Shown here one piece after another: positions 174 to 55,774 of a stretch of DNA of 64,000 nucleotides. Below the pieces are notes generated by a model. The model was not told the origin of the DNA and ran no database searches. It saw only the letters and a list, made by a program, of their open reading frames with translations. The stretch is from Laetmonice hystrix. Lineage: Eukaryota. Both the position numbers and the translations under genes were made by a program. Every line of letters starts with the position of its first letter. Position 1 is the stretch's first letter. The stretch is taken from NCBI GenBank assembly GCA_965235115.1, contig OZ249444.1, positions 21,328,001 to 21,392,000 of the forward strand, read 5' to 3'.

Positions 174-192
174 AAAGACCGGATCTTTGAGA

Positions 193-24631: not shown

Positions 24632-24632
<1 letters not shown>

Positions 24633-26010: not shown

Positions 26011-26049
26011 CTGGAGGTTGTGGTATCGTGACCAAGGCCCCGGCCATGG

Positions 26050-29700: not shown

Positions 29701-30049
29701 GGGTGGGTGGGTGGGGGGGGGGGGCTGGGGACTGAAGGTAAGGAAGGTAAGGTTAGGAAATAATGTTAGATTTGTAGTTGTTACCCCGAGATTTGGTGGA
29801 TATGTTACCATGAAGGATGGTGTGTGAATGAGCCCTACTCCGTCCACGGTCGGTGAGTGTGTGATCGGAGATCCCAGTGTTGCCGTCCCTATAGTGTAAT
29901 GGATGCAAACAATCACTTGCTGCACAACTCACCGTCATTCCTATGCATGGGGCCCTGATTGGAAATATATTCACTCCACCGCATCCAGTCTCAACCAATA
30001 CATGTCCTCCGGCAGCGGCGTAAATTAGAGAACTGCTGGTAGTTACAAT

Positions 30050-31000
30050 TGGAGCTCTGTTTAGCCGAGTGGCCAAAATGAACTACTTTTCAGCAAAGTC
30101 TTATTCTTTTCATTGGTTAATGAGAGAATTGGGGTGCATAGCTTGGATGTAATGGGTAGCATGTTTTATTTGGCACCCATTTGTAAATATAATGAGCCTG
30201 CACTTGGTAAATAATGATTTGAATATTTTAGAAGCCCACCCCCCGGCACTTCATATGGGACACTTTGTGAGCTGCAGCATTACTTATGATTTGGTGAGAA
30301 CGTTTGGAAGAGGCTGAGTATTTATTGTGCACCATTCGTTATGAATATTCATTGTCATTAGTGTCGAGTGTCGGCGTGCGGCGTGTGAAGACTGTCGGAG
30401 GGAATACTTCTCACCATGAACTGTCAGATACTTAAACTCTGATGTTAATGCCAGCAGTTTGTCGACATACAATGGCTGGGATCTCTTAACACCTCAACGG
30501 GAGAGAAGACCATCTTAAAACAAGTTCATTCCTTATTTCCTTTAACAAACCATTTATAATTTTAAGGGGTAAAAAGGGAAAGTTTGCAGAAATGGCTGCG
30601 CTGTGCCTTTTTATCTATATCGCGTTGAAAATACAGTGATTGTTAAAAAAAAGTCTCGATTCTTGTCAGAAAATGTGTCATGTTGAGGAGGTGGTAATCA
30701 GCTCCATGATGTATCTGATGAGGTGGGCAGGCGTGTGTTGAAGTGTGCCGTGGGCTGGTTTTTGTGGAGGTCTCTCGGAGCATTCGGTTACCCAGTATGA
30801 ATGCGGATTCTGGCAGTGGCGAGCGGTACTGAAGGCAGTTGGCGTGCTGAGGAACCAAGGGCCGGCCAAGGCGAGGTTTAAAGTAATGGATGGTCCCAAT
30901 CAGGACATGATGCATGGCAGCACCCACCGTTATTGATTAAGTGTTGGCGGAAAACGGCGTCCTCAGAGAGGAGCCAATTGTAGCTGGACACAGAGATCTG
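30050..31000 (-). mobile_element. Decayed Penelope-like RT
   Basis: IHYFKPRLGRPLVP (cf. IHK..PGRPIVS), THFLTRIETF (cf. TTHFL.KIE), KYLTVHGEKYSLRQ (cf. NYF.FNG..YLQ), YIQAMHPNSL (cf. LNSIHPNIKFT); collinear. Confidence 0.6.
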
Positions 31001-31779
31001 GTGGGCCTCTGAAAAAAGTCACTTGTGAATGAAAAATGAAAGTGGTTACATTGGTATCAGTTGGGAGCATGCAGGGCCGCCAGTTAAAATTTGGCCTTCA
31101 TTATGTAATGAGGATTCAATGATTAGTTTGTCAATTATAACCGTCAGTTGGACGCCAACCGTTTCACTCCATGGCTATTAGAAATGTAATGATATAGACA
31201 GGATATCCAGCGAGGAATGTCTGAATATTGTTAAAATTTGAAAAAAAATGAGAAAAAAAAACCGACAGTGGTAGTACCCGGTTGAAGATGAGACCTCTTG
31301 AAGTAGGAAATCCTGACCGAAGAACCGTGGCCATGCAAACGGGTCGCATGTCTTTGACAAGATAATACGATACGGCGTTTCCCAGGGCCCTCCTTGGGAG
31401 ATTAAGGGACTGTCGACCGTTCTTATCTGTGGCTCGGCCAGTGTTGGCAAGCGGCGGGTCACTTACCAAGGAGATCGCCACCCTCTTTTACCCTGGGTCT
31501 GTCACGTCAGAACGGCGCGATCCTGCCCAGCCTAGACAAAGATCGCACTGCAGGAACACCCAGTTCAACGGGCCATGGCTGCGATAAGCGAGGGAAGGGT
31601 TCACAGCACGGGACGACTAGGGAAAAGGTACCCCTCCTGATCCAGGGTATAGACACTGGAGGAAAACATCCAGTACTGCTGGGACCGGAGGGACAGATCC
31701 AGAGTTTACAACACTGGAGGAAAGGATCGAGTAGATTTACATCAGGAAGGGAACTAGATCATGGGGAAACTGGATCAGG

Positions 31780-32750
31780 TTAGGACAGCAAGAACAGGGC
31801 CTGAGTTAGCAAGGGACGGGGAATTGGGACACTTGTTTTGAGAATGTCCCAACAATCAGGACATAAGCACCAATGGCCACGGTGGAGGTCATCATGAACG
31901 GAAGGGACTGGGATACTCCGAGCCGACTCTGTCTGTATAAAAACAGATGTTGGTGAGGACCTTGTTGGAAGCAAAAGTTGGTTATTAGTGCACGAGGAAT
32001 CGCAGGATCTACGACCTACCATAAAATATCAAATTGATGTGTAGTTTCAGATTGATAGAATCCGGATGAAATAGAGAAAGTCTAAGAAGCCGTTAGTGAG
32101 GTCCTGCAGTGGAACCCTGTCAGGGAGTCTGACTGGAGCGCCCCCTGGGGCAGACTGGCGGTACCTGGGCAGCTGGAGGGGACTTCACTTGGCCTGAATA
32201 ATTGGCAAGTCATCAGTTGGAAGATTGTCCTCGCCTGCTTGTCTCCACTTGCATAAAAAGGGAAACAGTGTGGCAATTGATTTTTGGACAAGCAATTAGC
32301 GGTTTAATAGGAATAAGTCATTTTAATTTCACTATACTGAATGTGTAAGGTTGGGCATTCACGTGTATCTCTTCAAACCCAGATAGAACATGGAGGGAAT
32401 GGAAGGTCGACATTGTAGAGTTTTTCTCACAGACCCCACCCTACCGGAGGGAGGGTTCATTGAACGCAGCGAGAATTGGTATGTAATGACCTCGCATTCT
32501 GCTGGCCCGCCCGGCGCCTGGCCCCAGTCCTCAGGCCCCAGTCCTCAGGCCCACGATGAATGAGGCCAGTCTAATTATTGGCTTCAATCATTCTCATCAT
32601 CTCGTCGCTGTGAAGAGAAGCCAAGGCGCAGGTCTTGTCAGTTGGTACCCTGCCACAACTCCAGATGGCGCAGTTTGATTGGTCGAGATTTTGTAGGATT
32701 ATTGGCCTCGCCTCGGGCGAGACGGCCATTGTCAATCCACAAATCACAGT
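31780..32750 (-). mobile_element. Possible decayed Penelope-like fragment
   Basis: RVPTDKTCALASLHS (cf. RKPTD...YL...S.H), RSIPVP and CWDIL (cf. RIP...HWHIL); weak. Confidence 0.3.
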
Positions 32751-34219
32751 CACTCCCCATCAAAACATAAGGCCAGCCTGAATAGTGGTTAGGGATTACA
32801 TAGAAAAGGTACACCTAAGACGAGTCAGCATATTGCCTGATTGGTCGGTTGGTTTACGAGGGCCCGTTCGACATTGTTGTTGGGGAGCTTGATGAAGATC
32901 TGTACTGAAATAGGCAATTTTCCCCCGAGGTCGAGTTACGACGTCCAGGCCATCAGGAACTCGGATTCCGTGGCTGGATGCGGGTCGGACATGTTTTACG
33001 TCGTCCTGGGAAAGGTCAAGTGGGGGGGGGGGAGGACCCCCTTATTAAGATGATCCTTGAGGGGCCTTTACGTTAAATGTTTAATTCTAGTTTTTGGCAG
33101 CACATGTTGCGCCAGGAGAATTTTTTGCCGCAGTGGTCCAGTAGGGTTTAAACAGGAGCATTAGAAAAGTTAATGGACAGAAGCAATTATGCGCTTTGAA
33201 GGGCGTAATACATTTTTTTCCGACTTCAATACTCGCTGGGAGGTGGCCCAACACTCTATGACGTTGACAGCCAGGAGCCTGTACCGCGAGCCGCAGAGCG
33301 ATATGGTTAGACAATGTCTGTTTCATAATTACCCTGGTGTCAATGGTAGAATGTTAGAACGATATTAAAATACTAATTAAAGAATTTTGATTGTGATTTA
33401 ATCTCGATCTCATTTATAGTCAGTAGAAGGTGTTTAGAGAGATGCCTGGCGGAAAGTCTGAATTGTCTTATGTTTTTATATACTCATTGTTCACTAGCCG
33501 GTAGCCCACATAGCGCTATATTGTTATTGTTGATGGCTCTTTCTCTGCTTTCGGAACACTTGCCACAACTGATAACCTTTCTTATTATATTGCATGAACA
33601 ACTTCACAAATAGAGATTCATAATGTTTTTACCATAATCATCTGTTAACCAGGACGTCATAATCTACTTCTACTGTCTGCATTGTAGAGTGAAAAAACTA
33701 GCTTGATTCATAACTAGTCAGAATATTGTTGGAGATTGGATAACAGAATGAAGTTCACTAGAAATAACTAGATATCGTCCTGCCGCTAGTTTGAGTTATT
33801 TAAGTTACTTACGTTCTCTGACATAGAATGGCTATACGAAGGCTTGTTTCTAGTCGTCTTACTCTCCTCATTCACAAAGTGGAGACTTATATTTGTAAGG
33901 CTCGATCTGAGGTGGAGAGGTAAGGTCAGACCTCAGGCGGAGCGACTTGTACGCCGCTGTGTAGTTTGTTGATTAGGTTAACAGCACTCAGCACTCACTC
34001 ATGGCAAACTTCATCCCCAGGGCGACTTATATAAAGGTTGAAGTTTTTGACGATTTGTACATGTATAAGGGATGTTTCCTTGCCACGTGTATATGGATAT
34101 TATCAGGAAGATTAAAGCTCTGTTTCATAATATATTTTATAGAGTTTGTTTTAAATACATTTTAGTATTTGGGCACATGAGCCAGATTTTGCTTGACAGA
34201 GCTAACTGGATAATTAGTA

Positions 34220-34800
34220 TTTGTGCAAAAGCGTATCCTCAGAGATAATAACTCACTTCGGGAAAAGGGAGGTATTCACTCCCCCATTGTCCTTTTTGGG
34301 ATGGACCTTGGTGCGCAGGCCGATTCGAAATGGTACACTATGATAGAAAAGAGCAAGTTCAAAACATTTTTAGTTGAGGGTAATCTTTCCATTGACTCGC
34401 CCGGTTTACCCGGCTGTAAAACTTAGAGAACAGCAAATGGAATTTAGAAACCTTACAAAATTATGGTGACATTTATGGGAGCTGCTGTGAATACTACATG
34501 TAATAGTGGCCTTGTGTTCACGATAATGATTATTAAATGGGAGAGTGTAGTCGTGGGCCAAGGGTACCCCTTCAACCCATTGATGGATCACTGCAACCAA
34601 TCGAAGTCTTATCTCCATGGTCTCTTCGACTGTGTTAGCACAAGACCAAATCAAACTTGGCAGTCACAAAGGACTTGTGGGGTTGATGTCGCCTTCGCAG
34701 GCGCCAGCTGAAATACATTTCTGCCGCCAGGAGCCATTTGTGCCAGCCGTCCGCGGGGAAAGGAGTCCATCTTAAATGATGTCTAGTCTGGTCGTGCAGC
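34220..34800 (-). mobile_element. Decayed Penelope-like RT C-terminal half
   Basis: AQMAPGGRNVF (cf. TKMAPSYANIF), FVRFLNSICCSLSFT (cf. F..LNSIHP.IKFT), TKVHPKKD (cf. T.LY.KPTD), LSLRIRFCT (cf. ALRLRRICS). Confidence 0.55.
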
Positions 34801-35999
34801 CAAGGAAGGTGAGGACAGCTAGATTTCCTGCTGCTGTGTGGCCATGCTGGGGGATAGTCTGTCAGTGAGAGGGCAAGTAATGGGAGTACTTTATGAGGCG
34901 ACAGGCCATGGCGTGTGGTGGGGCGGTGAGCGCAGGTGGTCCAACGACTGGAATATGTTCTCGGGCACTGCCAGCCCTCCCTCCCGCCCGGGACACCGGC
35001 AGTGTCCGCGAGGCAGTGTGGTCATTACATCAGGGTGTAATTGTTTAACGACCAAACGAGGACATGGTCCTCGTCACAGGCAGTCCTGACGGCGGGTTCC
35101 CACGCCCCCCTCACTCTCCCCGGATCACGGCTGACTGACCCACGTATTTTCTATCTATAGAGCCAGTTTCCCCTATTAAATACGGACCTTAGGTAGAGCA
35201 GCAAAGCCTCCCATATCATATAACTTGACAATAGCCGGTCTGCTCAATGTACAGACAATACAGGAGAGATGATCCATGGTTTCCAGATAAAAGGGACGAC
35301 CCGCGTGGTGAGGTAATCATGAGACTGAATTAAAAAAGGTGTTCTAGAATGAGCTTATCCGGTCAAGTGAGATATAATCACGAGGGGAGCCAAACTTGGT
35401 GATAATGTCGTCTTCATAGTAATATTAGGAAATAGTTTAGATCCCTTCAGTCCCCGACCTTTTACTATGGCTTCATTAGTGGACTTAAATTGGCGGGTCA
35501 CAATTGACGTGTATTGTCTACATAAATCACATGGCAAACAGTTTCTTTAATTTCAATCCCAGATTACCGGTAAGTGCCAGAGTGCCGTCTATAACGCAGC
35601 TGCTCTGTAGCCCACCACCCAAAGAGCTCTTTATTAATCTATGTATATAGAGATTAAAAAAGCAGGAGCTTGGAAAGTCAGCTGTCGTTGATGAACAAAG
35701 TGGATTGAGTGGTGGAGGTAGACACATATTGTAATGTCTACGAGTGGCTGTCAGCCTTTGACTTGAAAAGACTGATAGGTTTGGTGGACATTCATCATGA
35801 CATGGTTCTCGGTATCTTCAGGCAGACCGACCTCTTTCAACACTCATGGGGGACACCGTTCATCAGTCCTGCTGTCTTACTGAGAGAATGTCTCTGAGAG
35901 CACCATAGTCTATGGCCGTCTATGTTGCTGGCAGAAATCCCAGGAGAGGTTTTGTAGCTCAATATTTCATTGAAGAAAAACAAGAACCCATACTTTATT

Positions 36000-36400
36000 A
36001 TGTCCATTACGAAATGACACCCGCATTAAAGGCTATAAATGTACGCTTAGAATTCATATGGATGGTATTCTATTCCCTGAATCGTAAACCTGGAATTTGT
36101 CCTCCCTTCGCGACATCACATCGAGTCGTGTTTGTAGGATAAATCCAAACGTGAACGTGTTCACTGTGAATGAACGCTTGGTTGAGTGTGTGATACACTT
36201 GATCACATAGACCATTGCGTGGATGAGTTGGGGATGGGAAGTGACGGGGGACAGATCCGTCAAAACCAGCTGCAGATGGCCCCACAGTCCACAGTTACGT
36301 GCCCTGGATATAAAAGCCAGAACGCGATTACCAACCCAGAAGGTTTCTTCGCAAACCTTCATCAATGTCACCCACTCTCGTGTATTGATATGCTGTAGAG
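36000..36400 (-). mobile_element. Possible GIY-YIG remnant of a Penelope-like element
   Basis: IYPTNTTRCDVAKGGQ...LRFRE keeps the IY-x6-C-x5-GQ...RF.E spacing of PLE endonucleases; weak. Confidence 0.3.
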
Positions 36401-37667
36401 GTTTTCTTATAGATTTTTTTAAAGGAAAGGGTTCTCTCTGAGAGAGCGTCAGGAGACCGACACGCTATCATTTAAATTCTAGATAGATACATTGCTTCTG
36501 TCTTGTTCTGGCATGAAAAGTTTAAATCTGATTAAAACTTCTTTGGTGGTCCATAACGTTTTTTATTTCAGTGTAGCTATTCACATTTGATGTGTAGGCG
36601 AGTATGAAATAGATGGAGTGTTGTCTACGAACACGTGCCTGTCGGCCTGGCGCTGCCTCGTAAACTTGATGGCTGTGCAGCTGGCTTCGTTTTCGTGACT
36701 GGCAAAAGTCTTGTGTCTGTGCGGAAATAACTTCCCCACATGCGGTAATCCCGCAAAGGCATACTGTCAGAAAGTTTTAAAAAAGTAATAATAATGAATA
36801 AAAAATCTGATCGATGTTTGTTCCATAAGATCAGTAATTCAGTCTGTAGTTTTTATTGTCACTATCTGGCTACCAATGGTTCATATTCCAGTAGTTGCCC
36901 GTGATCTAGAGGCGAAATTACATGTCTAAATTTGCACCAGTGCATGGGGTGCCCCCAAGAAAGTGCACTTTAATGTACATTGTCCCAGGTGTACATGTGA
37001 ATGTTACCAGGAGTGTTCTGGAGTTATCTGTAACGATGAGAATTATGTTCATCAGTTTTCTTAATGTGTAATCTTCCGACAGTGATGGTTCAGAAGCAAT
37101 CAGTCAGAATGTTGCTCAGAGACAATCATACCCTGAGTGAACTCGAGATTTTTTCTCTAAGCTCGGTTTCTGCTGATGTAATATGCACTGTTGAGGACAC
37201 GAGAGAATGGGATGGTAAATGAGCAGTGGGATATGTCCGAATCAGTGGGTGGCTAATAGCTACGATAAGATGGATGGGGACAGAGGGTGGAGGAGTGTCG
37301 GGGTGATTAGTGATCACCTAGAATAAATCTACTCCCTCTGCAGGCCCTTTCAATCGGTCTCGGGTCCAGGGCTTCACGGGTAAGTAGTCTATAAAAACGG
37401 GCAATGTTCTCAGGCTTCCTGCTTCTAGACGCCAGCGGCGGCGGGCTCACATTGTTTTCATGAATCTGTCATTGTGTGCCATTGGTCGGCTTGTACATTA
37501 CTGTCCATGAATGATGTCTTTATGACTGCAATATAGAGTAATTAGTCGATTTATACGGAAGTGTCTACTCTCGCTGTGCTGTAACGCCCATTTATTTCAA
37601 CCTTTATGAAAGCAGGTCCAAGATCTAGTTCCATTTTTCTGAATCCATTACCGCTATGTGATATTGG

Positions 37668-37900
37668 TTAAGCTGAATTTCTACTTTGTCTTGTCCGAGG
37701 ACTTAAGTTTGTGTACCATAGTCTCATAGTTGTGATACGATCCAATAAGTTACGGAGGGGAGAGGATAAGGGTGTCCATGAGGGTTGGAAAATTATTGTC
37801 GTAATACACTCTTGTAGTACTCGGCCATTATAGAAGGTTTGTGTAAGAGAAAACGTCATAGTTAGGTTATTCAGATATGTTGTATGCCAGGGCAAGTCCT
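37668..37900 (-). mobile_element. Decayed Penelope-like RT fragment, possibly a different (Poseidon-like) subgroup
   Basis: TFYNGRVLQ...SWTPLSSPLRNLL...RLWYTNL resembles F.FNG..Y.Q..G..MGSPLSP.LANL...W.RYVDD. Confidence 0.45.
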
Positions 37901-38917
37901 CAAATGTAGCTATGAGGAAGGTGGTGTTTAAACATGTTGTAACACCCAGAGTTTGGGGTCGTGGAGTGGGTCATCCAGCGTTACGTGGCAGTGCTATAGC
38001 TTGCCACTCCAGACATTGTGATAGTCATGCAACAAGCCTGATTGTGATTAGCCACATTTTGAACGTGCCTTCAGTTTCCTTTCATCATGTTTCGATTATC
38101 TAGACTTGTGTATGTAGTGAAGGCAAGGCGGTGGTGGTCTTGCAGGAGACCAGTGTCTCGCTGCCTACTTAATGATGGTTAATTGGTATAATTTACCATG
38201 TTGATTGCTTCATTTTTCCTGGGGAGTGGCGGACATTTGATGGTTTTAGCGTCACGTCAGTACTGTATGATTTAACAGCCAACGGGAGCGACAGATGAAA
38301 GTAAAAACATGCTGAGATTGGCCGCGGGTAGTGGTGAGCACTCGTGGATACTATCACACCGGTCGCCAGGCGGCGCTTTACTGCACGTGCAGGCACAGTT
38401 TGTACGTAGATACGGCTCCAACGATATACTTGTTCAGCACAGCGTGTAATCACTTGTAATGACATTATAAAGTGCAATTAGTGTCGGCACAATTTTATGC
38501 AGAGCCAGTGAGAGAGAAAGTCCAGGGAAGTGTTGCCGGGGATGGTGTGGTTCTGATGGTGTGGATTGCAGAGACCAGCAAGCCAGCCCCTAGTACGGGA
38601 TACCTTTACCGACCCGGCAGCTTTTCACAGTCGGTCAATTGAATTCCGAGAGGGGCTTGGTTGGGTCCCCCCTCCCCCCCCCCCCCCCCACCACCACCTC
38701 TCCCCTTTGCTCGGTGCCTGGTCATTCCTGCAGTGAAAGCCACTTCCTCCTCCAGGGCCATTTGTGTATGTTCACCGGACTCTGAACATGCAGCGCCCCC
38801 TGGGGGGAGAAGTAGTCATTATGATGCGATTCACTAAATGTCCGTGCTCCGTTTGCGAGCGGAGATAGAAAATTGACCATCACTTAGGGCTGGTCTTTAA
38901 ATGCCATCCTCGACAAG

Positions 38918-39553
38918 TTAATGTGACGTGGCAGTCATGTCGGGCTTGATAAGGGTCGTCCACGATCTAGTCACAGTCAGTTTAATTTGTGTGTTTTTCC
39001 TGAAGGGAGGTCTGCAAGCTGGCAAAGCCAAAGGAAAACATAATTGATAAGCACCCAAAGTCGGGGTTTGCCTGCATGCCCTGGTAATGGGATCCTCTTT
39101 GGTTGCCGTATTCAAAGAGTCACTGAAGACTTGTCGTGGATGTGAGCCGAGTAGATAGTGGTGCTCCGTTTAGTAGCCTCAGACTGAACATCCTGACACG
39201 TAGATGATAGATGGGTATAGATTGATAGAAACATCGAAACGTGCAGCAGGATGGAGCCGAGTGGAGAGTCGGAGGTACATTCTGTGGTATCAGGTCGAAG
39301 ACATGAAGGCGGCCGCTTACAGACCGTTCCACGTTAATCAGGTTACGATTGGAGAATGTCGGTTGACCAATATCTCGCCCAGGACAGACGAACGTACAGA
39401 AGACGCTGTTCGTCCTTCAGTGACCTTGAGGTGACTTCTACTCGGATCAGAGATAGCCCCAGTGGTTGGTATTACGTACCCTGACCCCGCTGACATCCAA
39501 TTATGGCAGTCAATACATGCCGCTACACACCGTGATTGGACGGACGATGGCAA
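38918..39553 (-). mobile_element. Decayed Penelope-like RT thumb and linker
   Basis: RSHLKVT (cf. HP.IKFT), QSIPIYHLRVRMFS (cf. SIPYSQALR.RRICS), TRSWTTLIKPD (cf. K.W..L..D). Confidence 0.5.
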
Positions 39554-39902
39554 CTACATGAGCAAATCTGTGACCAATTCTAGTCGCACAATAGGATCCT
39601 AAATTTGGGTAGAAAGATGGGGAGTCGGCTATTCCGGGCTCCTGGCAAGGTATGGAAAAAGGGCTTCAGTCGCCATCTAGAATCGGCATGAAAATGAGGG
39701 GGGGGGGGTTATTTTGTCACCAGTGGGGAGAGCTGTGATTAGATTGGATGGTGTGAGGGCAATAAAAGGAGGGTGGAATAAAAAAAACTAATGTTAGAAA
39801 AATCTATAGAAGTAGGGATTGATTGGTGACAATAGGAATCCAGCATCACTGCTATAGTGTGGTGTCAGGCCGTAGTCATACTTCTCTTTACCCAAATTAC
39901 AA

Positions 39903-40184
39903 TTATTACCTCCGCCAACCAGGTTGGAGGATGTTGTGTTTTCAACCCGGTCTGTCCGTTTTGTCTGTTCGCAAGATATCTCACAAATAATGAACGGATA
40001 TTTCATGAAACCTTCAAGTATGATTGGTCTCGTGCTAGGGAACAATCGATTTTTGGGTAGATCCGTATGTTTTCGTGGATTCAGGATCATTTGCCATTGC
40101 TTCATTGCGAGATAGGCCAAAATGTATGGAGGACTGCTCCGCTTGGTGGACTGAGGTATGCGTTCTACTGAACGCCCTCTAGTT
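39903..40184 (+). mobile_element. Non-autonomous Helentron/Helitron-type element (HINE, DINE-1-like)
   Basis: 5' ttattacctccgccaa; internal gtctgtccg/gtctgttcg microsatellite-like stretch; degenerate sub-terminal inverted partner ttggtggactgaggta; perfect 3' hairpin gcgttc-tact-gaacgc followed by cctCTAGtt. Confidence 0.7.
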
Positions 40185-40806
40185 TGTAAATGTGTTGGCA
40201 GTTCCATGTGTTGGTATGTTCCATGTGTTGGTACATTTGTTCCAATGCCAATGTACGTTTACAACCACAAAGATATCTTCGTTAATTCGGTGGGTTTGCG
40301 TCCGAACACATTAACATGAGGACGGGCGTTTTTCAGTGTGATTTCGACGTCTTAATTCAAACGTCGAGGTTCCGATTCCCTACCAAATCCTCTGGCTCGT
40401 GGCGGTTACGTAGCAACCGCCGGCCTCTCTCTGAGCTTGGCGGGAAACAATAGAGGAGACAAAGACGTGTGAATGAAGCCAGGTACCGGGCCAGGTTGAT
40501 AACGGACTGGAAACAAAAGACAGAGAAATTAGGATATGGGTGTTTTTCTTCTGGGACACGGGAACAATTGTGACTGAAGCAAGGAATTTCTTTTAGTACA
40601 AGTTGAGTAAATCAGAGGTCACCAAGTTAAGGATATTTGAAGGAACTCCACATATTAAGACAATCATCATAACTCACCAGATATTGTCTTTAAAACTTAA
40701 CTTAAAAGGTCCCTTCGAAAAAATATACCGGTACATCTATTACACGGGAAAACCTTGTGTTAAATAATTTAGCAGGTGAAAACAGTTTTGCAAACCTGTA
40801 TCTCAA

Positions 40807-40883
40807 AACTAATTTGTATCACCTTTTCTCTGTTTCAGGTATGTATTCTCTTCTCTGTTCCTTGTTCGATCCGGGAGGTAAGT
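40807..40883 (+). promoter_or_regulatory. Candidate recursive splice site 2 (AG|GT at 40837-40840) with 39-nt cryptic exon 40839-40877
   Basis: Branch-point match actaat, tract ttgtatcaccttttctctgtttcag|gtatgt, then a second donor gag|gtaagt at 40878. Confidence 0.6.
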
Positions 40884-41249
40884 CGAGAACTGGGTAAATA
40901 AGGGAGGATGGCTGGAAGTTAAGAAGGTAACATTTTCCAGTATACTACATAAAGGCTTGACTATAAAACTAACATGATTTAAATTGATACCAAACCTTTC
41001 CTCAAATTAACCATTAATTAACCCCTTACAGTGGGTGCTTTGTCCTTGGCGTGGTAGTCAGAATTTAATCGCCAAAATTGACAAAACCGTCAAAGAAAAC
41101 AATCTAAGCATGGTTCTTTGATGTTCCAATCCTGTTTATGCACTCAGTATAAGAAGTACCAAACCTCGGTTGACCAGCTGGATAAAGCTCTCCCAGTACC
41201 CGTTGTATCAATTAACCAACCAAGTTTACTTAATATTTAAACGGCAGTC

Positions 41250-41900
41250 GATAATTAAAGTCTGGTTAAAATATACCATTGGGTAGTTTTCGTTGTCTGA
41301 GGCCTCAGCAAACCAACGTATTTCTGTTGCATTTATTTTGTTTTAGGACTGGCTGTAAAATATTTTCCAGTTTTTTGAATGGCAGTGCTCAGAATGCCTT
41401 ACCAACGGTCATTGTTGCGTTTGATGAGATACATTCATGTTGATACAAGATAGCTGGCACCTGCTTTAATGGAAGTCAGTCAACCCTTATCGGCATGAAA
41501 TACTGGTGTTTGATAGCGTTGTGATATATATCGTACCGTTTTCCCAATCAAACCTATTTCTGGTCGATGGCGTCGGAGGGCATCGTCCTTTTGAAGGTCG
41601 GCCATTCAGCTGCAGCTTGGCCGTGTGATCTCAGGGCCCAGCGTTGTACGCCCCAGAAACCAGTGACATTATGGCTCTGTCAGTCTGGCATCAATTCTTG
41701 ATGTGGCAGCCGATAGGTAGTAACGAAGGGCACCTTGTTCAACGCACTTGGTACAGGTTCCAGCGAAAGGCCATGATGACATTGGCGCCAGGCTAGCAGC
41801 CGTTACACGAGGGTATTGTTAGAAAGATCTACAGCCGAGGTATTGGAACACGGCAGTATCTGGCGGGGCTGTTAGTCAGGAGCCAGTCGAGCAGCGCTGG
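41250..41900 (-). mobile_element. Decayed Penelope-like element (thumb, linker, GIY-YIG)
   Basis: ILPCSN (cf. RRICSN), NKVPFVTTY at about 41715-41742 (cf. RIPFV.TYHP), QQKYVG at about 41312-41332 (cf. KQYVGET). Confidence 0.5.
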
Positions 41901-42439
41901 TGGCAGGAGAACGAGTGATGCCTTCAGGTGGCCTACCACTCCACGTCTCCAATATATGGGGCGTCATGTTATCAGAACTCTAGCAAGAGTATCCTCATGA
42001 CCAGCAACAATGCTTCTGTCAAACAAGGTGGCACCAATAGAGAAAGGCTGCTTCCTTAAAACCAAACTGATTTAATAGAAGATGTTTAAAAACTAAGATG
42101 GTATCAATGCTGATAATCTGGATGAATTTATTTTGGGACACTTAGACCAACTCGTGTTACTAACATTTTCAAACATAGCCAGGCTGCAGTGGCTGAACCG
42201 CTGCGAGGCAGTGCTTGCCTCCACGTTGATATTCCACAGATTTGACCCCTCCTTACATAGTTAGGTCAAGTGTCAACTAAAGCAGTAGCCGTAACCTTAT
42301 CAGACATTGGTGTGTGCTAATGAAAGAGTGCTCTCAGGGGGTGATTTGCCCGGTCGTCTCTCAGACTACAGACGGCTCCGACACTGAGGACCAGAGATTG
42401 GGTAAAATGTCTGGGATGCTGAGGCTCCACGGGGCACCG

Positions 42440-43430
42440 TTAAGTGATGGATGGTAAATGAAATTCTAATGGGATGCGATCTTTTTTAGTCACACCTCCT
42501 CGGATTTGGAATTGGCTAAAGAGTGCAAAGTGTTTTCTGATTGGAATACGGCTGTTGGGAAGTCGACAGAAGTGTTGCCAAAGTGTGCTATGTGTATTGA
42601 ATGTGGCGGAGCAGGCCTGGGGCTGGCAACAGGGCGTCCGGGGCTTTGGAACGCGCCGATTGTCAAGGAACAACCTTGGAGCGTAAACTGGGAGAGAGTC
42701 GGGTGTGGTGGTTGAAAATGGCCCCACCCCGCCGACCCACTCTGGGGGACACGCCAGTCTGATAATTCGGGTCCCAATGACGGCGTGTTAGTGCGGTAGG
42801 GACGCCTCCAGGGGCAAGTAGGGGGAAATCTGATGTGCCCTGTTATCAACGGGGTAAAGGGAAAGGAAACGGGCTTTTAGGAGGAGTTAGATTTTGGTCA
42901 GTATGCCAGGGAGCGAGCAGGAGCTTCGGTGAATTCATTGGAGGAAATCTCCTGGGCTGCGTCTGTGCTGGATCAGCGGTTGCTGGAATGGCTCCCTATT
43001 CCACGACTGGTGGCGAGGATAAAAAAGCTCACCTTTCTCGTTTAACAATACGAAGTAAAAGCCTGTGGCTCGCCCGGAAATTGCAATTGATTACTGAAAT
43101 GCACCGGCACATTGTTTGGTGGTCCTCCCGTAAAATGTGTAGGGAGAGACTTTGAGGAATGCAAGAATTGGATGCAGCGCTCAATTTAGTATGCAGCAGA
43201 GACGACCTGTACAGCAAATAGGCGTTTGGGAGAATAGATTGTAATCAACATTTTTTTTACCAGAAGATGAGACAAGTTGAACAAGAAAAGTCACTCGGGA
43301 TACTTGAAGAGAAACTCGAGAGAAACTAATCATTTTAAGGCTAGTTTTCACTGCGGGATCTTGAAATAGAAGACATTTACCAATCGTATTGAGGAAATGG
43401 CTGGAAGAAAAGCTTAATGAAATCAATGAA
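42440..43430 (-). mobile_element. Decayed Penelope-like RT
   Basis: SSHFLNTI (cf. TTHFLNKI), HPTLSQFT (cf. HP.IKFT), KKDRIPL (cf. K.DRIPL). Confidence 0.45.
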
Positions 43431-44261
43431 TTTTTATTTTAAACGAAGAGAGACCAACTTGTGCCATTCAACATGTATTAAGTAGCCGACAAATAGACTT
43501 TAAAGCCTTTCAAGGCACAGGGTATTCTATGTGTCAATGCGAGATCTAAGATTGCTTTGGTTACAGGCTGAGGGACCTGGTCCCAGAAGTGCGGGTAATC
43601 AATTATATGCCTGGGGGAATAAGGCGTAATGCTATACAGGCTGTATTAAGAGGTGGGCTGGCTCTCAAGGTAGTGGATAGGTGAGAGGGTAGATCACATT
43701 TCATCAATACATTTAATGCATTACAGTTAGACAGGAGGTGGTGTGCAGGAGAAGAGCAATGAAGGCTTAGTAGAAGGCGTCAAGGATCTAATAGTTTACA
43801 TCCCAGAATGAACATTGACGTATCTATGGAAACCAGAAACTTGATTACATTTCTCTGAATTCTAAAGGTGAAGGCGTATATGTACTGCTAGTTGAAGCGT
43901 TTGAAGCAGGCGTTTATTCTCAAATGAATTTCCGAGACGCTATTGTTTCATCCCCAGTAACAGCCGGTATGTGAGAGTCGAGTCTGGTATCATGTGCGAT
44001 TGTGAAGGACATAGTGTAGCCCCTAGCAGCTCGCAGATACAACATTTTAAGCCTCGTCTGGCATAGTGATCATTTGTTGAGTCATTGCTATCATTTGTAG
44101 CATCATAACTACAATCTCATTGCTACAATCTGTGCGTCACTGCTGTGATTGTAGCGTCAGAGTTGTATTGATCTCGTCTAACCAGCAGTGAGCCAGAGTG
44201 TCGCTGTCCGAGGACGTCATACAGTACTCGAGTTACGTCTTTACTCACGTCAGCCATGAAA

Positions 44262-44514
44262 ACATTCTTCACTGTAATAGCCTGATGGTCGGCCATCATT
44301 CCGTCCCCATCTCACCCCGACATTCTTCACTGCTGTGGGCTGGTGCCCAGAGCACATCGATCTGGGGACTGTAATAGCCTGATGGTCGGCCATCATTCCG
44401 TCCCCATCTCACCCCGACATTTTTCACTGCTGTGGGCTGGTGACCAGAGCACATCGATCTGGGGACTGTAATAGCCTGATGGTCGGCCATCATTCCGTCC
44501 CCATCTCACCCCCG
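44262..44514. repeat. 97-bp tandem repeat, about 2.5 copies
   Basis: ctgtaatagcctgatggtcggcc recurs at 44272, 44369 and 44466. Confidence 0.93.
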
Positions 44515-45700
44515 ACACGCCACCAGAGAGAGTCAGCGCCATCCCTGCCAGGAAACAGCTGTAACGGCCGCCCACGTGACCGACCCCCCATGGAGTAAAG
44601 GTCACGGATCAGGAGGTCAGGGTAGCGGCCACTGACAGCCGTGATCAGGCTGTGTTGGAGGATAGGTCGGGGTGATTGGCAGGCTGGTGGGGGCCCGGCT
44701 TGGGGTGTCGGGACGGCGGGCGGGTGGCAGCTAGGCGGCGGCCTGTAGGAGGACCGACGAACCACGGAGGGACTCGGTCACTATTGTCTTGAGGGAGACC
44801 CGGCGAAGTCTGAGCATGTACTTATCAGAATATGTAAAGAGATTATCTGTGCTCATAATCCAAATATTAATCCGGAGGAGATTTGGTCAACCATATAGTA
44901 GATGGAGGGGTATTAGTATGATATCCGCAAGGCTATACGGAATGGTCCAAACGTGCAATGATATGTAAGCCTACATTACAACATCAGACATCAGTACTTA
45001 GGCCTACGGAGCGAACTATAAATATTTATCACTAAAAGCGATATACCTGCAAAATCTGAGAAGAATATAAATTTAATTATTGTCGAACCATCAGTAATAT
45101 GAATCGGTACAAATCGTGCTGTGATCCAAGGCATGGTTGTGATGGGTGTCGTGGTGGCGTTCTGTGCTATAATAACACCATTCCACGCCCTGTGTGTTCT
45201 GTCATGGTGTGTTGTGAGCGCCATTTAGCTGGCATACTTTGATCCATCCATCACAGCGCGTTTCCCGACAAACGCGACAAGACCCACATGAGGTAAACCC
45301 GAGAGGAGACAGAGCCCCCCGGGCTGATCCCTCCGGGCCGATCAACCCTCCGCCCCCGCAATGTGTGATCCCAGAACTGGGCTCCGCTTCCACCGCGGTG
45401 AAAGTTTCCATAATCTGTCGCGACAACCAAGGGCACACATCCATGACTCTGATCAAAGAACCATTGGGCGCCTCTCTTCATCTAGGTTCAGTTGGTTTCT
45501 CGCAACCAGTTCAGCGCGGCCCAGTATATCACTTTGGTGCTGGGGTTCGATTGATGCTGAAGATGTGGGACCAGCAACTGCCAGTTCATGCCAGCGTAAC
45601 AATCCGCTTGTGTTTATGGCCCAGCAGGATTCCAACGGAAATATTCTGTCAGATACTTGCTGCATGTTGTTGGGGTTCGCCAGGTACTCGGGTTGTCTGC
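44515..45700 (-). mobile_element. Decayed Penelope-like element, N-terminal region and RT core
   Basis: NLDEERR (cf. NL..EE..AL), LVVATDY, TARFVPIH (cf. TARFY.LPKIH), SLHVWTIP (cf. SLYTNIP), DNLFTYSDKYMLR (cf. NNF.FNDKYYLQ), RYPDLLI (cf. RYIDDIF); collinear. Confidence 0.55.
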
Positions 45701-45954
45701 CGGCTCAGCTAGTCAGGGTTAAAGCGTCGACGGGACCCTGGCTGTTTGTGGGGGCCGAAACACACAGTAACTGATGTAGCGGTCGTAACGTGAGGCCCAT
45801 GAGGTGCTGTGTGTCGTGTTGGACGTAAGGAGGGGGGGTGTAAGAGGGGACAGGGAGGGGGCCTTGAGAGGTAAGGGCAATTGGGAGCTTTGAAACGAAC
45901 GGCAAAGGGCGTAGAATGGGACGCCGTTTAAATGGCGCCGGGTTGGGGTGTGAT

Positions 45955-46316
45955 TGGTAGTCTGGGAGAGCAGTGCTTAGTCATCTGGGAGAGTAGTGGT
46001 CGGCTTGGGAGAGTAGTGGTCGACTTGTGATCGCAATGGTTGGTCTTGGAGAGCAGTGGTTGGTCTTGGAGAGCAATGGTTGGTCTTGGAGAGCAATGGT
46101 TGGTCTTGGAGAGCAATGGTTAGTTTGGGAGAGCAATGGTTGGTCTGGGAGAGCAATGGTTGGTCTGGGAGAGCAATGGTTGGTCTGGGTGAGCAATGGT
46201 TGGTCTGGGAGAGCAATGGTTGGTCTGGGAGAGCAATGGTTGGTCTGGGAGAGCAATGGTTGGTCTGGGAGAGCAGTGGTTAGTCTGGGAGAGCAATGGT
46301 TGGTCTGGGAGAGCAG
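45955..46316. repeat. 20-bp minisatellite, about 14 well-conserved copies plus a degenerate 5' part
   Basis: Unit tggttggtct(t/g)ggagagcaa. Confidence 0.95.
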
Positions 46317-48544
46317 TGAAGAGATGTTCCTGTGGATGATAACTGTAAATGTGCTCACGGAGTGCGTGTTGAACGTCCCCGTCGTGAGATTAGGCTGGGT
46401 TGCTGGGAGACCTGCCATCGACTCGATGGTTGTAGGTCAGTTTTGACACGTGAAGCTCTGTGTCCAGAGTGCAGGGTTCGGGTCGTTGCGGAGAGGAAGG
46501 AGTAGGGAGGGGGCAGCTTGGTCATGGGTCCAGTTGTAGGTCAGCGTCGCTCCCATGAGCTGCTGTCACGGCTGCCCTGACCCCCTTCTCGGCACTCAGT
46601 GGGGTCAAGGCCATGGATGTGTCACCATAATCCAATTTAAAACGACGGCGTACTTGGCTGTCCGTGTCAGCACGGCAGCCTTGGCGCCCACACCGGACAA
46701 GGCTGAAGGCTGACCTGTCTCCATGTACACTGAAAGGGTCCTGGTACTGGTGGTCTGTGTGTTACAACAGACATTGTCAGAACTTGTAAACCTACAAATG
46801 TCGGCTCTTGTCAGGCGAGAGGCGCTGTCAGTCCCCGACTGCTAACAGACAGGCCTAATGCTCCTCTTAACCCAGCCAAAGCCAACCGTCATCTCAAATC
46901 CGACCCACACCATCAATCCGCCCCTGCCGTAGGCAGCATTTTGAATAAGCAATGTTCGTACTTTGTCGGATTTGCAGCCATCATCATTGACTTATTTAAA
47001 TTGAATGCCTGAATTAAAGCATTTTACTGTTGCAGTTAATTGTTGATTTGTTCAGAATAACATCTGTGGTATTACAGTAAGTTTTGAGCTGAAATTTCCT
47101 GGGTTAACAGTTGAAAAATATTACCTTGAGCCTCCTAATCTGTCCAATCCGCTCTTTCGAATCGATGGAGGAATTCAAAAACGGCTCACTTCAACCGTTT
47201 CTATGGTGTTACTTGTTCAGTTTTCACCGAGTCCTACCTAAAACACATGAAATGCATTAGTTACGACATGTTTTGATGTCTTGGTGGGCCCAAGTGCAGC
47301 ATGTGGGCCTATTTTGATTTAGTTTTTACATAAAGATTGATCCCAGAGCTGGTGCGACAGAAACGTGTACATGAGTCTACAGTAACAGTTACTCGAACCA
47401 GTTGTGTCATATCCATACACAGAACGGAGAAGGGCCGTCAGCGGGCCCCAACCCTGGATATCGGACGATGTATAGGTCCCGAACGTTGGTGTTTCACCCA
47501 CTGCTATCCGGCCGGCCACGGACCGTCCACCGCCTTGTTGGAAAGTTTTTTTTGTCTGTTGAAACGGCCCCCCGCCCTCAAATAGCACTGACCTCAAGTG
47601 GCGGAGGGATGAACTAAATACGGACAGACCGTGTCGTCATACTTACCTTCCGAAGAAATTCTCTATGTATAGGCCTACATTTGCCGTCCCTAATCCAATG
47701 ATCCCTTATGGTAATGACTAACCATACATATAGTATATATCAGGGTTATAAAAATATACCTGTCATAATGATGCCGGATAGGTCTTCCCACCGGTAGTGG
47801 CAGAACTAAGGATTACATTGTGTTCTCATAAATTGATCAATGCAGATTGTTCTGCCGGTACAAACAGTATTTGTAATTCTGTGAGGTATCACGCCGCTAA
47901 TAGATCACGGGAGTTTTTCACCAGATACCACTGATTGAGGAGAGCAAATGAGCGTCGTGAGAGTGCTCACAGTTAGTAGTTTATGGAAATAGGAGTTTGT
48001 ATCAGGCATCGGCCTGATCAACGGTGGCGGTTGGCGCCAAACTGGCCTCGAGGATAGTCGTTTTAAGTAGTAAGTTAGGAGAAGTCCTCACTGATGAATT
48101 CATAGACATTTCTTGGAAGATCATTATCAATTCCAGGGATATGAATTATAGTTTATCTGTAGCTTTGATTTGTATGATGGATATGGTTCCAAGTCATTGA
48201 CCTTTTGAAATCTTCTCGTATCAACTTGATTAAACTGAGTAAAGGACAACAGAAGTAAAGGATTTGAATTTACCATTGCCAAACTTAGAGGCTGTAAACG
48301 TAAGAGGTTATAGTAAAAAAAACCCCTTAAGATCACGAAAATGGTAAAAGATTTCTCGAATATACAGCCACAGAGTACCCCACCTAGCTACCGGGTATTC
48401 TGTGATACAGCTTTAAAATCGGCCTGAATGTGTAGAATCTACGCTTAAAACTGGAGTGGGTAGTACAAGTACAAGTAGGAGAATGAAGCTAAAGCCTGAT
48501 GTTGAAACTAGACTGGGTTTTAAGAACCTACCAGGTCAATCCGT

Positions 48545-48855
48545 CAGGCTTGACATGGATATGATTGAGAATGGGTAGGCCTTTTAGATTGACCTGGATT
48601 TGATTGAGAATGGGCAGGCCTTTTAGATTGACATGGATTGAGAATGGGCAGGTCTTTTAGATTGACATGTATTTGATTGAGAATGGGCAGGTCTTTTAGA
48701 TTGACATGTATTTGATTGAGAATGGGCAGGTCTTTTAGATCGACATGGATTTGATTGAGAATGGGCAGGTCTTTTAGATCGACATGGATTGAGAATGGGC
48801 AGGCCGTTTAGACTGACATGAATTTGATTGAATATGGGCCGCCATTTTAGATTGG
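48545..48855. repeat. 39-bp minisatellite with 34-bp variants, about 8 copies
   Basis: Unit atttgattgagaatgggcaggtcttttagattgacatg(t/g). Confidence 0.93.
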
Positions 48856-49054
48856 CTCCGACATGCTGCCTATAGCACGCGTGTCGAGGGTTAGGCTGGG
48901 TGATCCACAGATGAACACGGCTTACCGAGATGAGTTACCACTGATCCTGTGATGGCCAGCAAATCACAGGCAGCACTTAAAAGTACTTGGAGGCTCAGCG
49001 GACCTGCTTATAATGGGAGTGACACGGCGGACTAACAGGGCGCTAACACCAGAC

Positions 49055-49529
49055 CCTCGGGTCTGGGGATGTGTTAGCAGCCTCGGGTCTGGGGATGTGT
49101 TAGCAGCCTCGGGTCTGGGGATGTGTTAGCAGCCTCGGGTCTGGGGATGTGTGAGCAGCCTCGGGTCTGGGGATGTGTTAGCAGCCTCGGGTCTGGGGAT
49201 GTGTTAGCAGCCTCGGGTCTGGGGATGTGTTAGCAGCCTCGGGTCTGGGGATGTGTGAGCAGCCTCGGGTCTGGGGATGTGTTAGCAGCCTCGGGTCTGG
49301 GGATGTGTTAGCAGCCTCGGGTCTGGGGATGTGTTAGCAGCCTCGGGTCTGGGGATGTGTTAGCAGCCTCGGGTCTGGGGATGTGTTAGCAGCCTCGGGT
49401 CTGGGGATGTGTGAGCAGCCTCGGGTCTGGGGATGTGTCAGCAGCCTCGGGTCTGGGGATGTGTTAGCAGCCTCGGGTCTGGGGATGTGTTAGCAGCCTC
49501 GGGTCTGGGGATGTGTTAGCAGCCTCGGG
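49055..49529. repeat. 26-bp minisatellite, 18 nearly identical copies
   Basis: Unit cctcgggtctggggatgtgttagcag; occasional gtgagc/gtcagc variants. Confidence 0.97.
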
Positions 49530-51769
49530 ACTGGCAAGTCCTTCTCATCCTATGTGGCATTAACAGCGCAATATGGATGGAAATGGTGAGTGTATATTAA
49601 GAAGTGGAAGGGATTTATATCTGATGGAAAGAGAAATGTGTCTGCTAACTGTGGCGGGTGTGATGGTAGCAGAGAGAGAGAGGAAGAGTGTGTGTGCGCG
49701 GGAATGGGAAGATTATCCAGTCGCCATGGCAGCACACCGGCGTATATCAAAACGACAAGTTGACAGTCACAGCGCTGACTATTCACATTCAGGTCCCGCT
49801 GACGTTCTGGGGTTTTTTTTCTCTGTCTCTCTCAGTGGCGATCATCAATCACACTTCATAAGGGACCCCTTTGTTTAAACCAGACGGATCCTTGTTTCAT
49901 ATTTGTGAGGGGGTTGCAGACTGTATTTAAAAATCATATTTTATGTCCATGGCAATGAGTTCTGGCTGGATGGAAGGACTTATGGCGAATGCTAAGGTTG
50001 CGCATACAATCGATGGTTTCATGTTTCATGTATGCTGCGACTGTCCGATAAAAGCTCCCTCTGACTTCAGCTGACGTACCTTGGGGCATGGAGAGGGCAG
50101 TTTATCCAACATGCTGGCCAACACGTACATTTCATACACAGCTGATATCGCCTGTGCAGGGATTATATTTGTGGAGCCTATGACATTGATTGAAAGCTCT
50201 CTATTCTTGATGGTACGCTGGCAGGAACACCTCAAGAGATCTCCTGGATCTGACAGATTTAATCTATGAAAAACCAAATAGAAAAATATAATAACAGTCA
50301 AACATGGCGGCGATGTAGGGGCTTATGTCAACAAAGGTGAGCTGAAGAATGCCAAACGCATGTTATCACTGAAATTTTACGTTACTTTGAGATATTCTAC
50401 TTCTAAGAGAATGTCATAAATATAAGGCGAATCCCCGATTGTCAAGAAATCGCCGATATGAGAAAAATGTCTAGTGGAGTTCTCTGAGCGGCCCCGGAGC
50501 CTGTCGACATTGAAGCTGATCTCTCTGGTATAAATATGTATACAATCACCCCCAGGAAAGCCCACCCTCCCGGTTAGCGAACCGGAAGGCCAGATCCAAT
50601 TAACATGATTCACTGGGTGACATATTGGGGGCGCAGGCCAGCCGGCGGGGGGCCGTGTGTGTGGTTATTTGTAGATCAACCGGGGGTGGTGGGTGGTGGC
50701 AGCCTTTCACCCTAACCCCCCACCCCCGTGGCTAGATGTGCCGGTGTGTAAGGCATGTCGTCTTTACAATAGCTGGAACCCAGCTGCTGTTGGTGACTGG
50801 TGGAGTCAGTCAATCGGAGGAGAGTTCTTGATTTGTAACATTCTGGCAAATCTTATGGCTGTCTGTCTGCTTCAAGCCAAGCGTAGAACATGATTCAATC
50901 GATAAAAAAAGTTGCTGGAAGTGAACCCTTGTAGGAAAATAAACAACAGATAGTTGGTGCTTTATTACCGGGGCTCCTTGGGCTAAAATATTTATACAGT
51001 TTTTATGCTACCAGAACTCCAGGTTTAGGTTCAAATGTAAATTTTTGTTGGTATGCAGTTTAGTTCAGATCTACTCTGGGAACGTTAATCATTATGTAAA
51101 GATATTTCCAGGTCCGTTATAATTATTGTAAATATTCGTATTAATTTTTTAATCTAGTCAGAAAGACTCCATGGTGTAGGATAAATAACAGTCAATATGT
51201 AAGACATTGGTCAGGGGTGTCGGTGAATTCATCGAGTAGAAATAGAAAGGCTTTACTATAGTGCAATCTTGTACCGCCAGGTGGCTACTCGGGTGGAGAT
51301 AGTTGCTGCCATCTGGTGTTAAAAAATAGCTGCGAACGAAGTCTGACAGCTAACTCTCCAGATCAAGAACACTCAATAGTGAAAAAGTCGGCAGAACGCA
51401 ATGAGCTTAATTAAACGTGAGCAGTATTTAAACCAAATTGCATGTATCAAGAGATCCCTGCCTCATTAAGGAACGTTTAAAGAAGTTAATTGAATTTGAT
51501 AGTCTAATAATGCAAATCACACAACAGGCGTGGCTGACATACTGAGTGCCTGGACTCAGTGTAATTGAAGACCTCCTATATGGAGATAACTAATACTGTC
51601 CGGCGTTTAAAAGATGTCCTGTATAAGGACTGTTTGTCATCTGTTCTGAATCCTGTTGATAACGTAACATCACAGCTGGTGAGTTGATCGTGTCAATGAG
51701 TTAGTAGAAGTGAGAGAATATAAGGATTACAAGCACTGTATTTATGTCTGGTAGCTCCAGATGATGTTT

Positions 51770-53341: not shown

Positions 53342-53492
53342 CACGTCTGAAAGCACAGCGTCCCATGTAGAACTAAAGAGTATTGAGGGCCCAAAATGAT
53401 GTGGTAATTTTGCCAAATAAACCTTAATGATTTTTGTCTCAGTTTGTTAGCCAGCTCAGTCTTGAAGACGGGAACCAGATGTAGGCCTTAAT

Positions 53493-53558
53493 CTGTACAA
53501 GTCAAGAATAAAGTTTACAATATTGAGTAATAGACATAATACGACCTGTACCACTCAC
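53493..53558 (-). other. Probable 66-nt 5'-UTR intron of the GT47 gene
   Basis: Minus strand reads CCAG|gtgagtgg ... ctttattcttgacttgtacag|ATTAAG: strong donor and pyrimidine-rich acceptor just upstream of the CDS. Confidence 0.6.
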
Positions 53559-53842
53559 CTGGAGGGGTTGGTATTCCATGGAAACCCTCACGTTAGCCTG
53601 ACCGTCGGTGTCTGTATATATACACTGGGTTCACCAAGTTGAGAACCGTACGTCTCTACGAGATCCGACTGGAGCATTCTACTGGTCAGACCGGCAGGCT
53701 CCCTCTGGTGGTGACTTGAGGTACTCGCCTTCTTTTGTGCAACGATCACGGAGGATGGCAGACTGCCATCGCCTGGCCTGAGCATGTTGTTTATGTTGCA
53801 AGAGAGTCAAAAGATGGGTTAGGCATTATTTAGAGAGTCAGT
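53559..53842 (-). other. Possible non-coding 5' exon of the GT47 gene
   Basis: 3' end defined by the donor at 53558; 5' end tentatively at acceptor atcttatctattgttag (53843). Contains upstream ATGs and cannot join the main ORF in frame. Confidence 0.4.
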
Positions 53843-54220
53843 CTAACAATAGATAAGATGGGATGCCGTCATTTTCCCCAGAGGAAGCAGAAATAAAAAT
53901 AGAAACATTGTTAATTTAAGTGGATACAAGTAAATGTGAAAGAAGATTTGTTCGGGATAAACAGATCCCCCAAAATGGTCGCATACACTGGCTGTCCATA
54001 CCCTAAAAGAAGCACATTTATCTGGTCGCATAGACCTAGATTCGGTCCATGTCGGTGGTGAAGTAAGAAGTGTATGGAAAAAGGCCTTAGTTACAAGTGG
54101 GCGGAAGTCACAGTGTATGTGCATATACATACGGAGCAACATTTACTGTGTTATTCAGTAAACTATTGTTCAGTTTTTATCAAGGTCAGAAAACATTAGA
54201 TACGTAATGCCAATGCACAC

Positions 54221-54383
54221 AGACGCAGCACAGCGCGTAGCAGGAAAGTATCAGTACGGAGACGTATGCAACACGCCGCCAGAATCGCATTGAGGGAGCG
54301 ATCTTTGCTGCAGGCACTCAGTGCGCTGGAGCAGTGTGTATGCGATTAAAATATGACGTGCTGCAACGCGGTGTGCTGCGTCT
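54221..54383. mobile_element. Short fold-back / MITE-like element
   Basis: 23-bp inverted repeat (agacgcagcacagcgcgtagcag / ctgcaacgcggtgtgctgcgtct, 2 mismatches) enclosing an inner 8-bp inverted pair aatcgcat/atgcgatt; no clear target-site duplication. Confidence 0.45.
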
Positions 54384-55669: not shown

Positions 55670-55774
55670 CAAAAAGCAATGGGCTCCGTGCTGTTCTCGG
55701 AGGTCACCAAGAGACTACAACTTTTGGAACAGGACTACTTCGACCTTGAGTTTATCGACATGAACGGAAACCCG
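55670..55774 (+). CDS. FARP1/2: FARP-family (FERM, RhoGEF and pleckstrin domain protein) coding exon, FERM F1 lobe
   Basis: Acceptor tgtttattacag|CAAAAAGCA, donor CCG|gtgagt; 105 nt, phase 0/0; translates QKAMGSVLFSEVTKRLQLLEQDYFDLEFIDMNGNP (FERM 'L-E-DYF-LEF' motif). Confidence 0.93.

Follow-up and report, generated by a model that had tools for sequence, protein, structure and literature searches.

The junction at 40838/40839 in the analysed DNA of Laetmonice hystrix is read here as the third in a set of three recursive splice sites, each a ratchet point with a short cryptic RS-exon, lying in the giant first coding intron of a FARP gene, in such a way that the intron would be removed in four steps; we place this reading a little above even odds, with a probability of roughly 0.55. 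As the site is the last of three evenly spaced acceptor/donor sites, the intron is probably removed stepwise, as happens in flies. Positions are those of the window, which is the whole stretch of 64,000 nucleotides analysed (C10:21328001-21392000); negative positions lie 5' of it, and a slash marks a splice junction.

The FARP gene and its giant intron

The host gene was identified from its exons on the plus strand. Open frames at 55.6-60.3 kb of the window encode a FERM domain, and the 52-residue exon at 60163-60318, when used as a query, retrieved FERM-RhoGEF-PH proteins, the named ones of which are called FARP1-like. Residues 68-1290 of the FARP1-like protein of Physella match plus-strand exons from 56.3 kb of the window to around 33 kb past its end, with the DH and PH parts among the matches. 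The finding of FERM, DH and PH exons on one strand, all matching the Physella protein, supports that the host is a true FARP orthologue. The named full-length relatives of the FARP family come from molluscs and arthropods, and the remaining ones from contigs of 1-6 kb.

The exon at 55670-55774 begins with QKAMGSVLF, midway through the F1 lobe of the FERM domain, so a further coding exon is required upstream. A tblastn search with orthologues found no N-terminal FARP exon within the 64-kb window. For this reason the search was repeated with 200 kb of upstream sequence added and with a profile built from 25 orthologous N-termini, and a single significant match was obtained, with no further N-terminal exon detected by the profile between this exon 1 (ending at -23056) and 55670. 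Across the exon junction, orthologue P0057 reads ...VPQKALGKVLF, and because the orthologues are continuous in this way, nothing is missing between exon 1 and the exon at 55670. The boundaries of the intron are therefore given by the following features:

-23157..-23056, plus strand: FARP exon 1, MSSPNSPQTSPRKGKYMPAKVYMLDDTVQMFQVP, followed by GTAAGT; single significant match of the profile search, E 5.3e-10
-23055..55669, plus strand: FARP intron of 78,725 nt, phase 0, occupying 1..55669 of the window; bounded by exon 1 and exon 55670
55670..55774, plus strand: next coding exon of FARP, FERM F1 lobe, QKAMGSVLF...GNP; joined in the protein to exon 1 (...MFQVP)

With exon 1 located 23 kb 5' of the window, site 40839 falls inside the 78,725-nt intron, on the sense strand of a long intron as expected for a ratchet point, and 14,831 nt away from the next coding exon. 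The initial annotation had proposed a giant FARP intron and a distance of 14.8 kb from the site to the next coding exon; the intron is indeed of 78.7 kb, in phase 0 and with exons of a FARP orthologue on both sides, and the distance to 55670 agrees with the one given.

Sequence elements at the junction

The elements found around the junction are the following:

40809-40813, plus strand: candidate branch point CTAAT, with the branch A at 40812, 26 nt 5' of the acceptor G
40820..40838, plus strand: pyrimidine tract (40820-40835) and CAG acceptor (40836-40838), with the 3' splice site after 40838
40839..40844, plus strand: GTATGT donor abutting the acceptor; ligation to exon 1 is predicted to give CCG/GTATGTAT
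40839..40877, plus strand: candidate RS-exon of 39 nt, frame 0 peptide VCILFSVPCSIRE, no stop, in frame with the phase-0 intron
40878..40883, plus strand: downstream consensus donor GAG/GTAAGT (GT at 40878, 7.68 bits), which would define the RS-exon

The branch point, the tract, the CAG/GTATGT fusion and the GTAAGT donor 39 nt further on were all present where they had been annotated before, and the claim that the 39 nt are open in frame 0 held as well. Among the 18 nt scored upstream of the CAG at 40836-40838, 15 are pyrimidines, which corresponds to a tract score of 0.83. The acceptor/donor core of an intronic ratchet point is present at 40838/40839 as CAG/GTATGTAT, whose donor differs from the ratchet consensus at a single position, +4, and the short RS-exon closed by a 5' splice site is present too, with 39 nt (around 50 nt being typical) followed by GAG/GTAAGT. 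Such an architecture agrees with intronic ratchet points as defined in the literature, whose RS-exons have ~50 nt (Joseph 2021, PMC8605326). Other sites with the full architecture in the same genome carry CTAAT or CTAAC at an equal distance from the acceptor.

The 701 nt surrounding site 40839 are single-copy in the 627-Mb assembly. The region is covered without joints by the DNA contigs of three runs from one sample, which contained 0 variants in 40774-40954, an interval in which only around one was expected.

The donor at 40878 could have a different role, closing an alternative first exon served by an internal promoter, with a truncated FARP made from the ATG within exon 55670 and the acceptor-like sequence being incidental. 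Alternative promoters are frequent in long first introns, and the ATG of exon 55670 has a fair Kozak-like context (gcaATGg). However, the composition at 40-41 kb is not promoter-like (GC 0.43), the F1 lobe of the product would miss its first two strands, and the presence of a branch point, a pyrimidine tract and a CAG fused to GT would be left unexplained. We regard such a first exon as very improbable.

A series of three sites in the intron

The reading of 40839 as a recursive splice site gains from the existence of companions. A strict definition, consisting of a tract score of at least 0.7 followed by YAG/GT[AG][ATG]GT, was applied to 264 kb on both strands. Only three sites were found, at -3911, 14638 and 40839, all of them on the plus strand and all within the FARP intron, in such a way that the 449 kb of strand outside the sense strand of the intron did not contain any strict site. 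The two sister sites are:

-3911 (C10:21324090), plus strand: first ratchet-like site, tract-TGTTTCAG/GTAAGTG, with a 65-nt RS-exon containing an in-frame stop
14609..14698, plus strand: second ratchet-like site, tract-TGTTTCAG/GTAAGTG, with CAG/GTAAGTG at 14637/14638, a 55-nt frameshifting RS-exon and donor GTG/GTGAGT at 14693

The three sites cut the intron into segments of 19,144, 18,549, 26,201 and 14,831 nt, which are more even than those produced by three random cuts, with a probability of 0.037 for the largest segment being this small and of 0.015 for the smallest being this large. The sequence common to the three sites is restricted to 16-23 nt at the junction, which marks them as independent occurrences rather than repeat copies. 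A repeat origin of site 40839 itself was considered and ruled out, given its single-copy surroundings and the likeness of the three sites at the junction core only.

From the observed architecture, intron, series of sites and genome-wide excess (see below) we infer every splicing step at this intron, and the steps at the third site would be as follows. The 39-nt unit at 40839-40877 would be recognised through exon definition, with the 3' splice site after 40838 and the strong donor at 40878 as its ends. After passing the sites at -3911 and 14638, exon 1 would be ligated to 40839, and this ligation would recreate a donor, CCG/GUAUGUAU. The regenerated donor would then be spliced to the acceptor of FERM exon 55670, with the 39 nt and the final 14.8 kb being discarded.

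Chance expectation and genome-wide counts

The frequency expected by chance was estimated with dinucleotide shuffles, which gave 0.12 strict sites per 64-kb strand, a value that fell to 0.003 if a consensus donor had to follow within 20-103 nt; the window itself has two such sites on the plus strand and none on the minus strand. With a loose definition (donor of at least 3 bits and tract of at least 0.65), the background rises to around 1.8 sites per 100 kb of strand, and at the donor score of 40839 around 1.4 loosely defined sites are expected per 79 kb of strand. At such a background the core motif alone is not rare, and it is the full architecture together with its context that is rare.

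These figures bear on the reading of 40839 as splice-like motifs that lie side by side by chance in a long AT-rich intron and are ignored by the spliceosome. Loosely defined fusions are indeed as common nearby as the background indicates, and the site was singled out post hoc, after being seen. The strict pattern, by contrast, is hardly expected in 64 kb, and even less when followed by a second consensus donor; moreover, the core of 40839 is common to the two stronger sense-strand sites of the same intron and is found nowhere else in the 449 kb of strand, and the spacing of the three sites is even. The counts made over the whole genome, as detailed in the next paragraph, divide in the same manner, with the GTATGT-type fusion not enriched over its offset control on one side, and the scarcity of second donors in the offset controls on the other. 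Taking both together, we consider a chance origin unlikely.

In the whole genome, the one-base-offset control has 86 occurrences and the reversed string 98, whereas TTTCAGGTAAGT has 218 (2.5x the offset control). Samples of 40 sites each were drawn from the GTAAGT-type fusion, the GTATGT-type fusion and the offset control. A tract score of at least 0.7 was found in 12 of the 40 GTAAGT-type sites and in 3 of the 40 offset controls, and the same proportions (12/40 and 3/40) were obtained for a second donor at 20-100 nt; both features concurred in 7 of 40 GTAAGT-type sites and in no offset control (0/40; Fisher P = 0.012). The GTATGT-type fusion, to which 40839 belongs, occurs 161 times and is enriched over the reversed string (62 occurrences) but not over the offset control (146). 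In the GTATGT-type sample a second donor was present in 12 of 40 sites and the full architecture in 4 of 40, with RS-exons of 45-68 nt. A pyrimidine tract is frequent in the sampled sites of the genome, and so is a second donor located 39-71 nt further on.

Neighbouring sites also have the same polarity in almost all cases. Among the matches listed, a count by eye of neighbouring pairs within 100 kb gave 15 pairs on the same strand and one on opposite strands, and such one-polarity clustering would be expected of introns with several recursive sites. One GTATGT-type group consists of three sites:

C2:31404491, 31421215 and 31460304 (L128-L130), minus strand: GTATGT-type series, tract-GTTTCAG/GTATGTAT, flanks mutually unrelated, sites 17 and 39 kb apart

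From its sequence, this group looks like another, independent recursive series.

Repeats were found among the motif occurrences. Five of the 40 sampled TTTCAGGTAAGT sites (L022, L035, L039, L052 and L057, on C1, C2 and C3) have identical flanks, ...GAGGATAAGTTTTCAG/GTAAGTACTGGTGT, and are thus members of a dispersed repeat family, and a tandem array of 99-nt units at C3:533773-534477 contains the motif TTTCAGGTAAGT eight times. Both inflate the raw motif counts.

Donor strength and reading frame

The regenerated donor CCG/GTATGT at 40839 scored 3.51 bits, versus 7.68 bits for the downstream GAG/GTAAGT, both values being approximate, as the matrix used consists of generic metazoan frequencies, is not trained on Laetmonice hystrix and leaves out positions +7/+8, where GTATGTAT fits the extended consensus. 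Constitutive donors of the same FARP gene have scores down to 2.9-3.8. Considering these scores and the match at +7/+8 that the matrix omits, the regenerated donor at 40839 would be usable, though disadvantaged. At the two sister sites the relation is the opposite, with regenerated donors of 6.49 bits, the same value as the own donor of exon 1, and RS-exon donors of 5.04 bits at -3911 and 5.25 bits at 14638.

In intronic ratchet points the donor is generally stronger than the donor of the RS-exon, and a cryptic RS-exon generally does not keep the frame (PMC8605326). The first of these features, which is a tendency and not an absolute rule, is present at both sister sites and absent at 40839; the second, an RS-exon out of frame or containing a stop, is also a tendency and is likewise absent at 40839, where the 39 nt are in frame and lack a stop. 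Judged by these scores and frames, site 40839 is the weakest of the three in the FARP intron. Of the ratchet-point reading made in the initial annotation, what stands is the acceptor/donor fusion with its short exon unit, to which the three-site series on the sense strand and the genome-wide over-representation can now be added; what speaks against it is the strength of the regenerated donor (3.5 vs 7.7 bits) and the in-frame, stop-free exon. The sites at -3911 and 14638, with their stronger regenerated donors and frame-breaking RS-exons, are better candidates of the fly type than 40839.

With a weak regenerated donor and 39 nt that are open and in frame, inclusion of the unit as a microexon is possible. 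In this case, the unit would be expressed as an in-frame microexon, whether a plain cassette exon or an RS-exon of the Ubx mI/mII type, spliced via donor 40878 in some or all transcripts and inserting 13 residues into the FERM F1 lobe, between its strand 2 and its helix 1. The length is divisible by three and the unit is stop-free in the frame fixed by the phase-0 intron; it preserves the frame and has a donor at its own 5' end (39 nt, open, beginning with GTATGT), as an expressed recursive microexon would, and donor 40878 (7.7 bits) is far above the regenerated one (3.5 bits). Expressed RS-exons are known, such as the 51-nt microexons of Ubx, and the donor of a ratchet point can be suppressed after splicing (PMC8605326), which makes partial inclusion of the 39 nt a live alternative. 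If the site is used, the in-frame exon can be expected to be included to some extent, since the downstream donor is stronger than the regenerated one. However, an insertion at ...VP/QK... was found in 0 of the 25 FARP-family orthologues that cover the region, none of which is from an annelid, and the peptide VCILFSVPCSIRE is hydrophobic and unlike any FERM sequence. A microexon would also leave two features unexplained, namely the donor with which the exon opens and the poison RS-exons of the two sister sites. We therefore hold a coding role of the unit to be rather unlikely, and keep the recursive splice site with a cryptic RS-exon as the preferred reading.

Comparison with known systems

Demonstrated cases of recursive splicing come from flies and vertebrates. 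In Drosophila, intronic ratchet points with cryptic RS-exons were reportedly described by Burnette 2005, Duff 2015 and Joseph 2018, and most vertebrate cryptic RS-exons reportedly contain premature stops (Sibley 2015).

The likeness to the Drosophila ratchet points concerns the site, the intron and the sister sites. Like them, 40839 has a pyrimidine tract-CAG fused to a GT donor, on the sense strand and deep in a very long intron; the FARP intron shares with the fly introns the presence of several sites with downstream units of 39-65 nt ending in a donor; and -3911 and 14638 share regenerated donors stronger than those of the RS-exon and RS-exons that break the frame. In contrast to the fly sites, 40839 has GTATGT in place of GTAAGT, a weaker regenerated donor and an in-frame, stop-free RS-exon, and the FARP host is that of an annelid.

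The expressed recursive microexons mI and mII of Ubx (Hatton 1998, cited in PMC8605326) resemble the unit at 40839 in being short 3n exons that begin with a donor and lie in a giant intron, and the inclusion or skipping of the unit would likewise hinge on the competition between the regenerated donor and its own donor. In contrast to the mI and mII exons, the unit at 40839 is a candidate whose predicted peptide is without a counterpart in orthologues.

Vertebrate RS-sites, found in long genes of the nervous system (Sibley 2015; Blazquez 2018, PMC6224609), are like 40839 in having a long host gene. In these, as would be the case at 40839, the RS-exon is defined first, and the regenerated 5' splice site is then set against the own donor of the exon. 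Unlike most vertebrate cryptic RS-exons as reported in Sibley 2015, that of 40839 has no stop, and the number of sites per intron and their spacing in FARP are more fly-like.

The mechanism is already known, and 40839 is a probable instance in a lineage for which the literature search returned no description. In the literature covered, this search found nothing tying recursive splicing to annelids (one irrelevant co-occurrence), Lophotrochozoa (no match) or molluscs (two incidental mentions), in agreement with the earlier suggestion that a case in this lineage might be undescribed. The homologue of FARP in the fly is named Cdep, and a literature search for Cdep and recursive splicing found nothing. 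When metagenomes were scanned with a gapped pattern (site core, gap and downstream donor), five matches were obtained, none of them similar to the locus.

The series of sites in an annelid FARP gene, together with the genome-wide excess, suggests that long introns are handled recursively in a third major branch of animals as well, and recursive removal of long introns may be ancestral. Site 40839 on its own is one further and comparatively weak instance of this pattern. A more extensive proposal would be that giant introns of annelids are routinely removed by recursive splicing, which would hence probably be ancestral to bilaterians, and that 40839 works as a regulated in-frame microexon switch, in which a weak GTATGT confronts a strong downstream donor and some tissues produce a FARP isoform whose FERM F1 lobe is 13 residues longer; this we consider distinctly improbable. 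For annotation, caution is advisable, in the sense that short poison or in-frame pseudo-exons at ratchet-like sites should not be called coding.

Other features of the window

The intron contains blocks of tandem repeats at 15195-16221, 45977-46446 and 49078-49490, which produce long spurious frames on both strands. The first block, at ~15.2-16.2 kb, is proline/threonine-rich, that at ~46 kb is of the GLGEQWLVWESNGWSGRAMV type, and that at ~49.1-49.5 kb is made of 51-codon units. At 39970-40166 the contig depth increases around tenfold, and near 39999-40094 the contigs are interrupted, with loose ends, in each of the three DNA runs, which points to a dispersed repeat roughly 0.7-0.9 kb 5' of site 40839. 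A search of the 64-kb window against Rfam gave no match.

A second gene was found inside the intron. It is an intact, single-exon gene of 548 codons at 51770-53416 on the minus strand, encoding a glycosyltransferase of the GT47/exostosin family (PF03016), and it is antisense to FARP, within the last segment of the intron. Its closest relatives are 36-39% identical, and the named ones, from molluscs, echinoderms and amphioxus, are called "xyloglucan galactosyltransferase-like".
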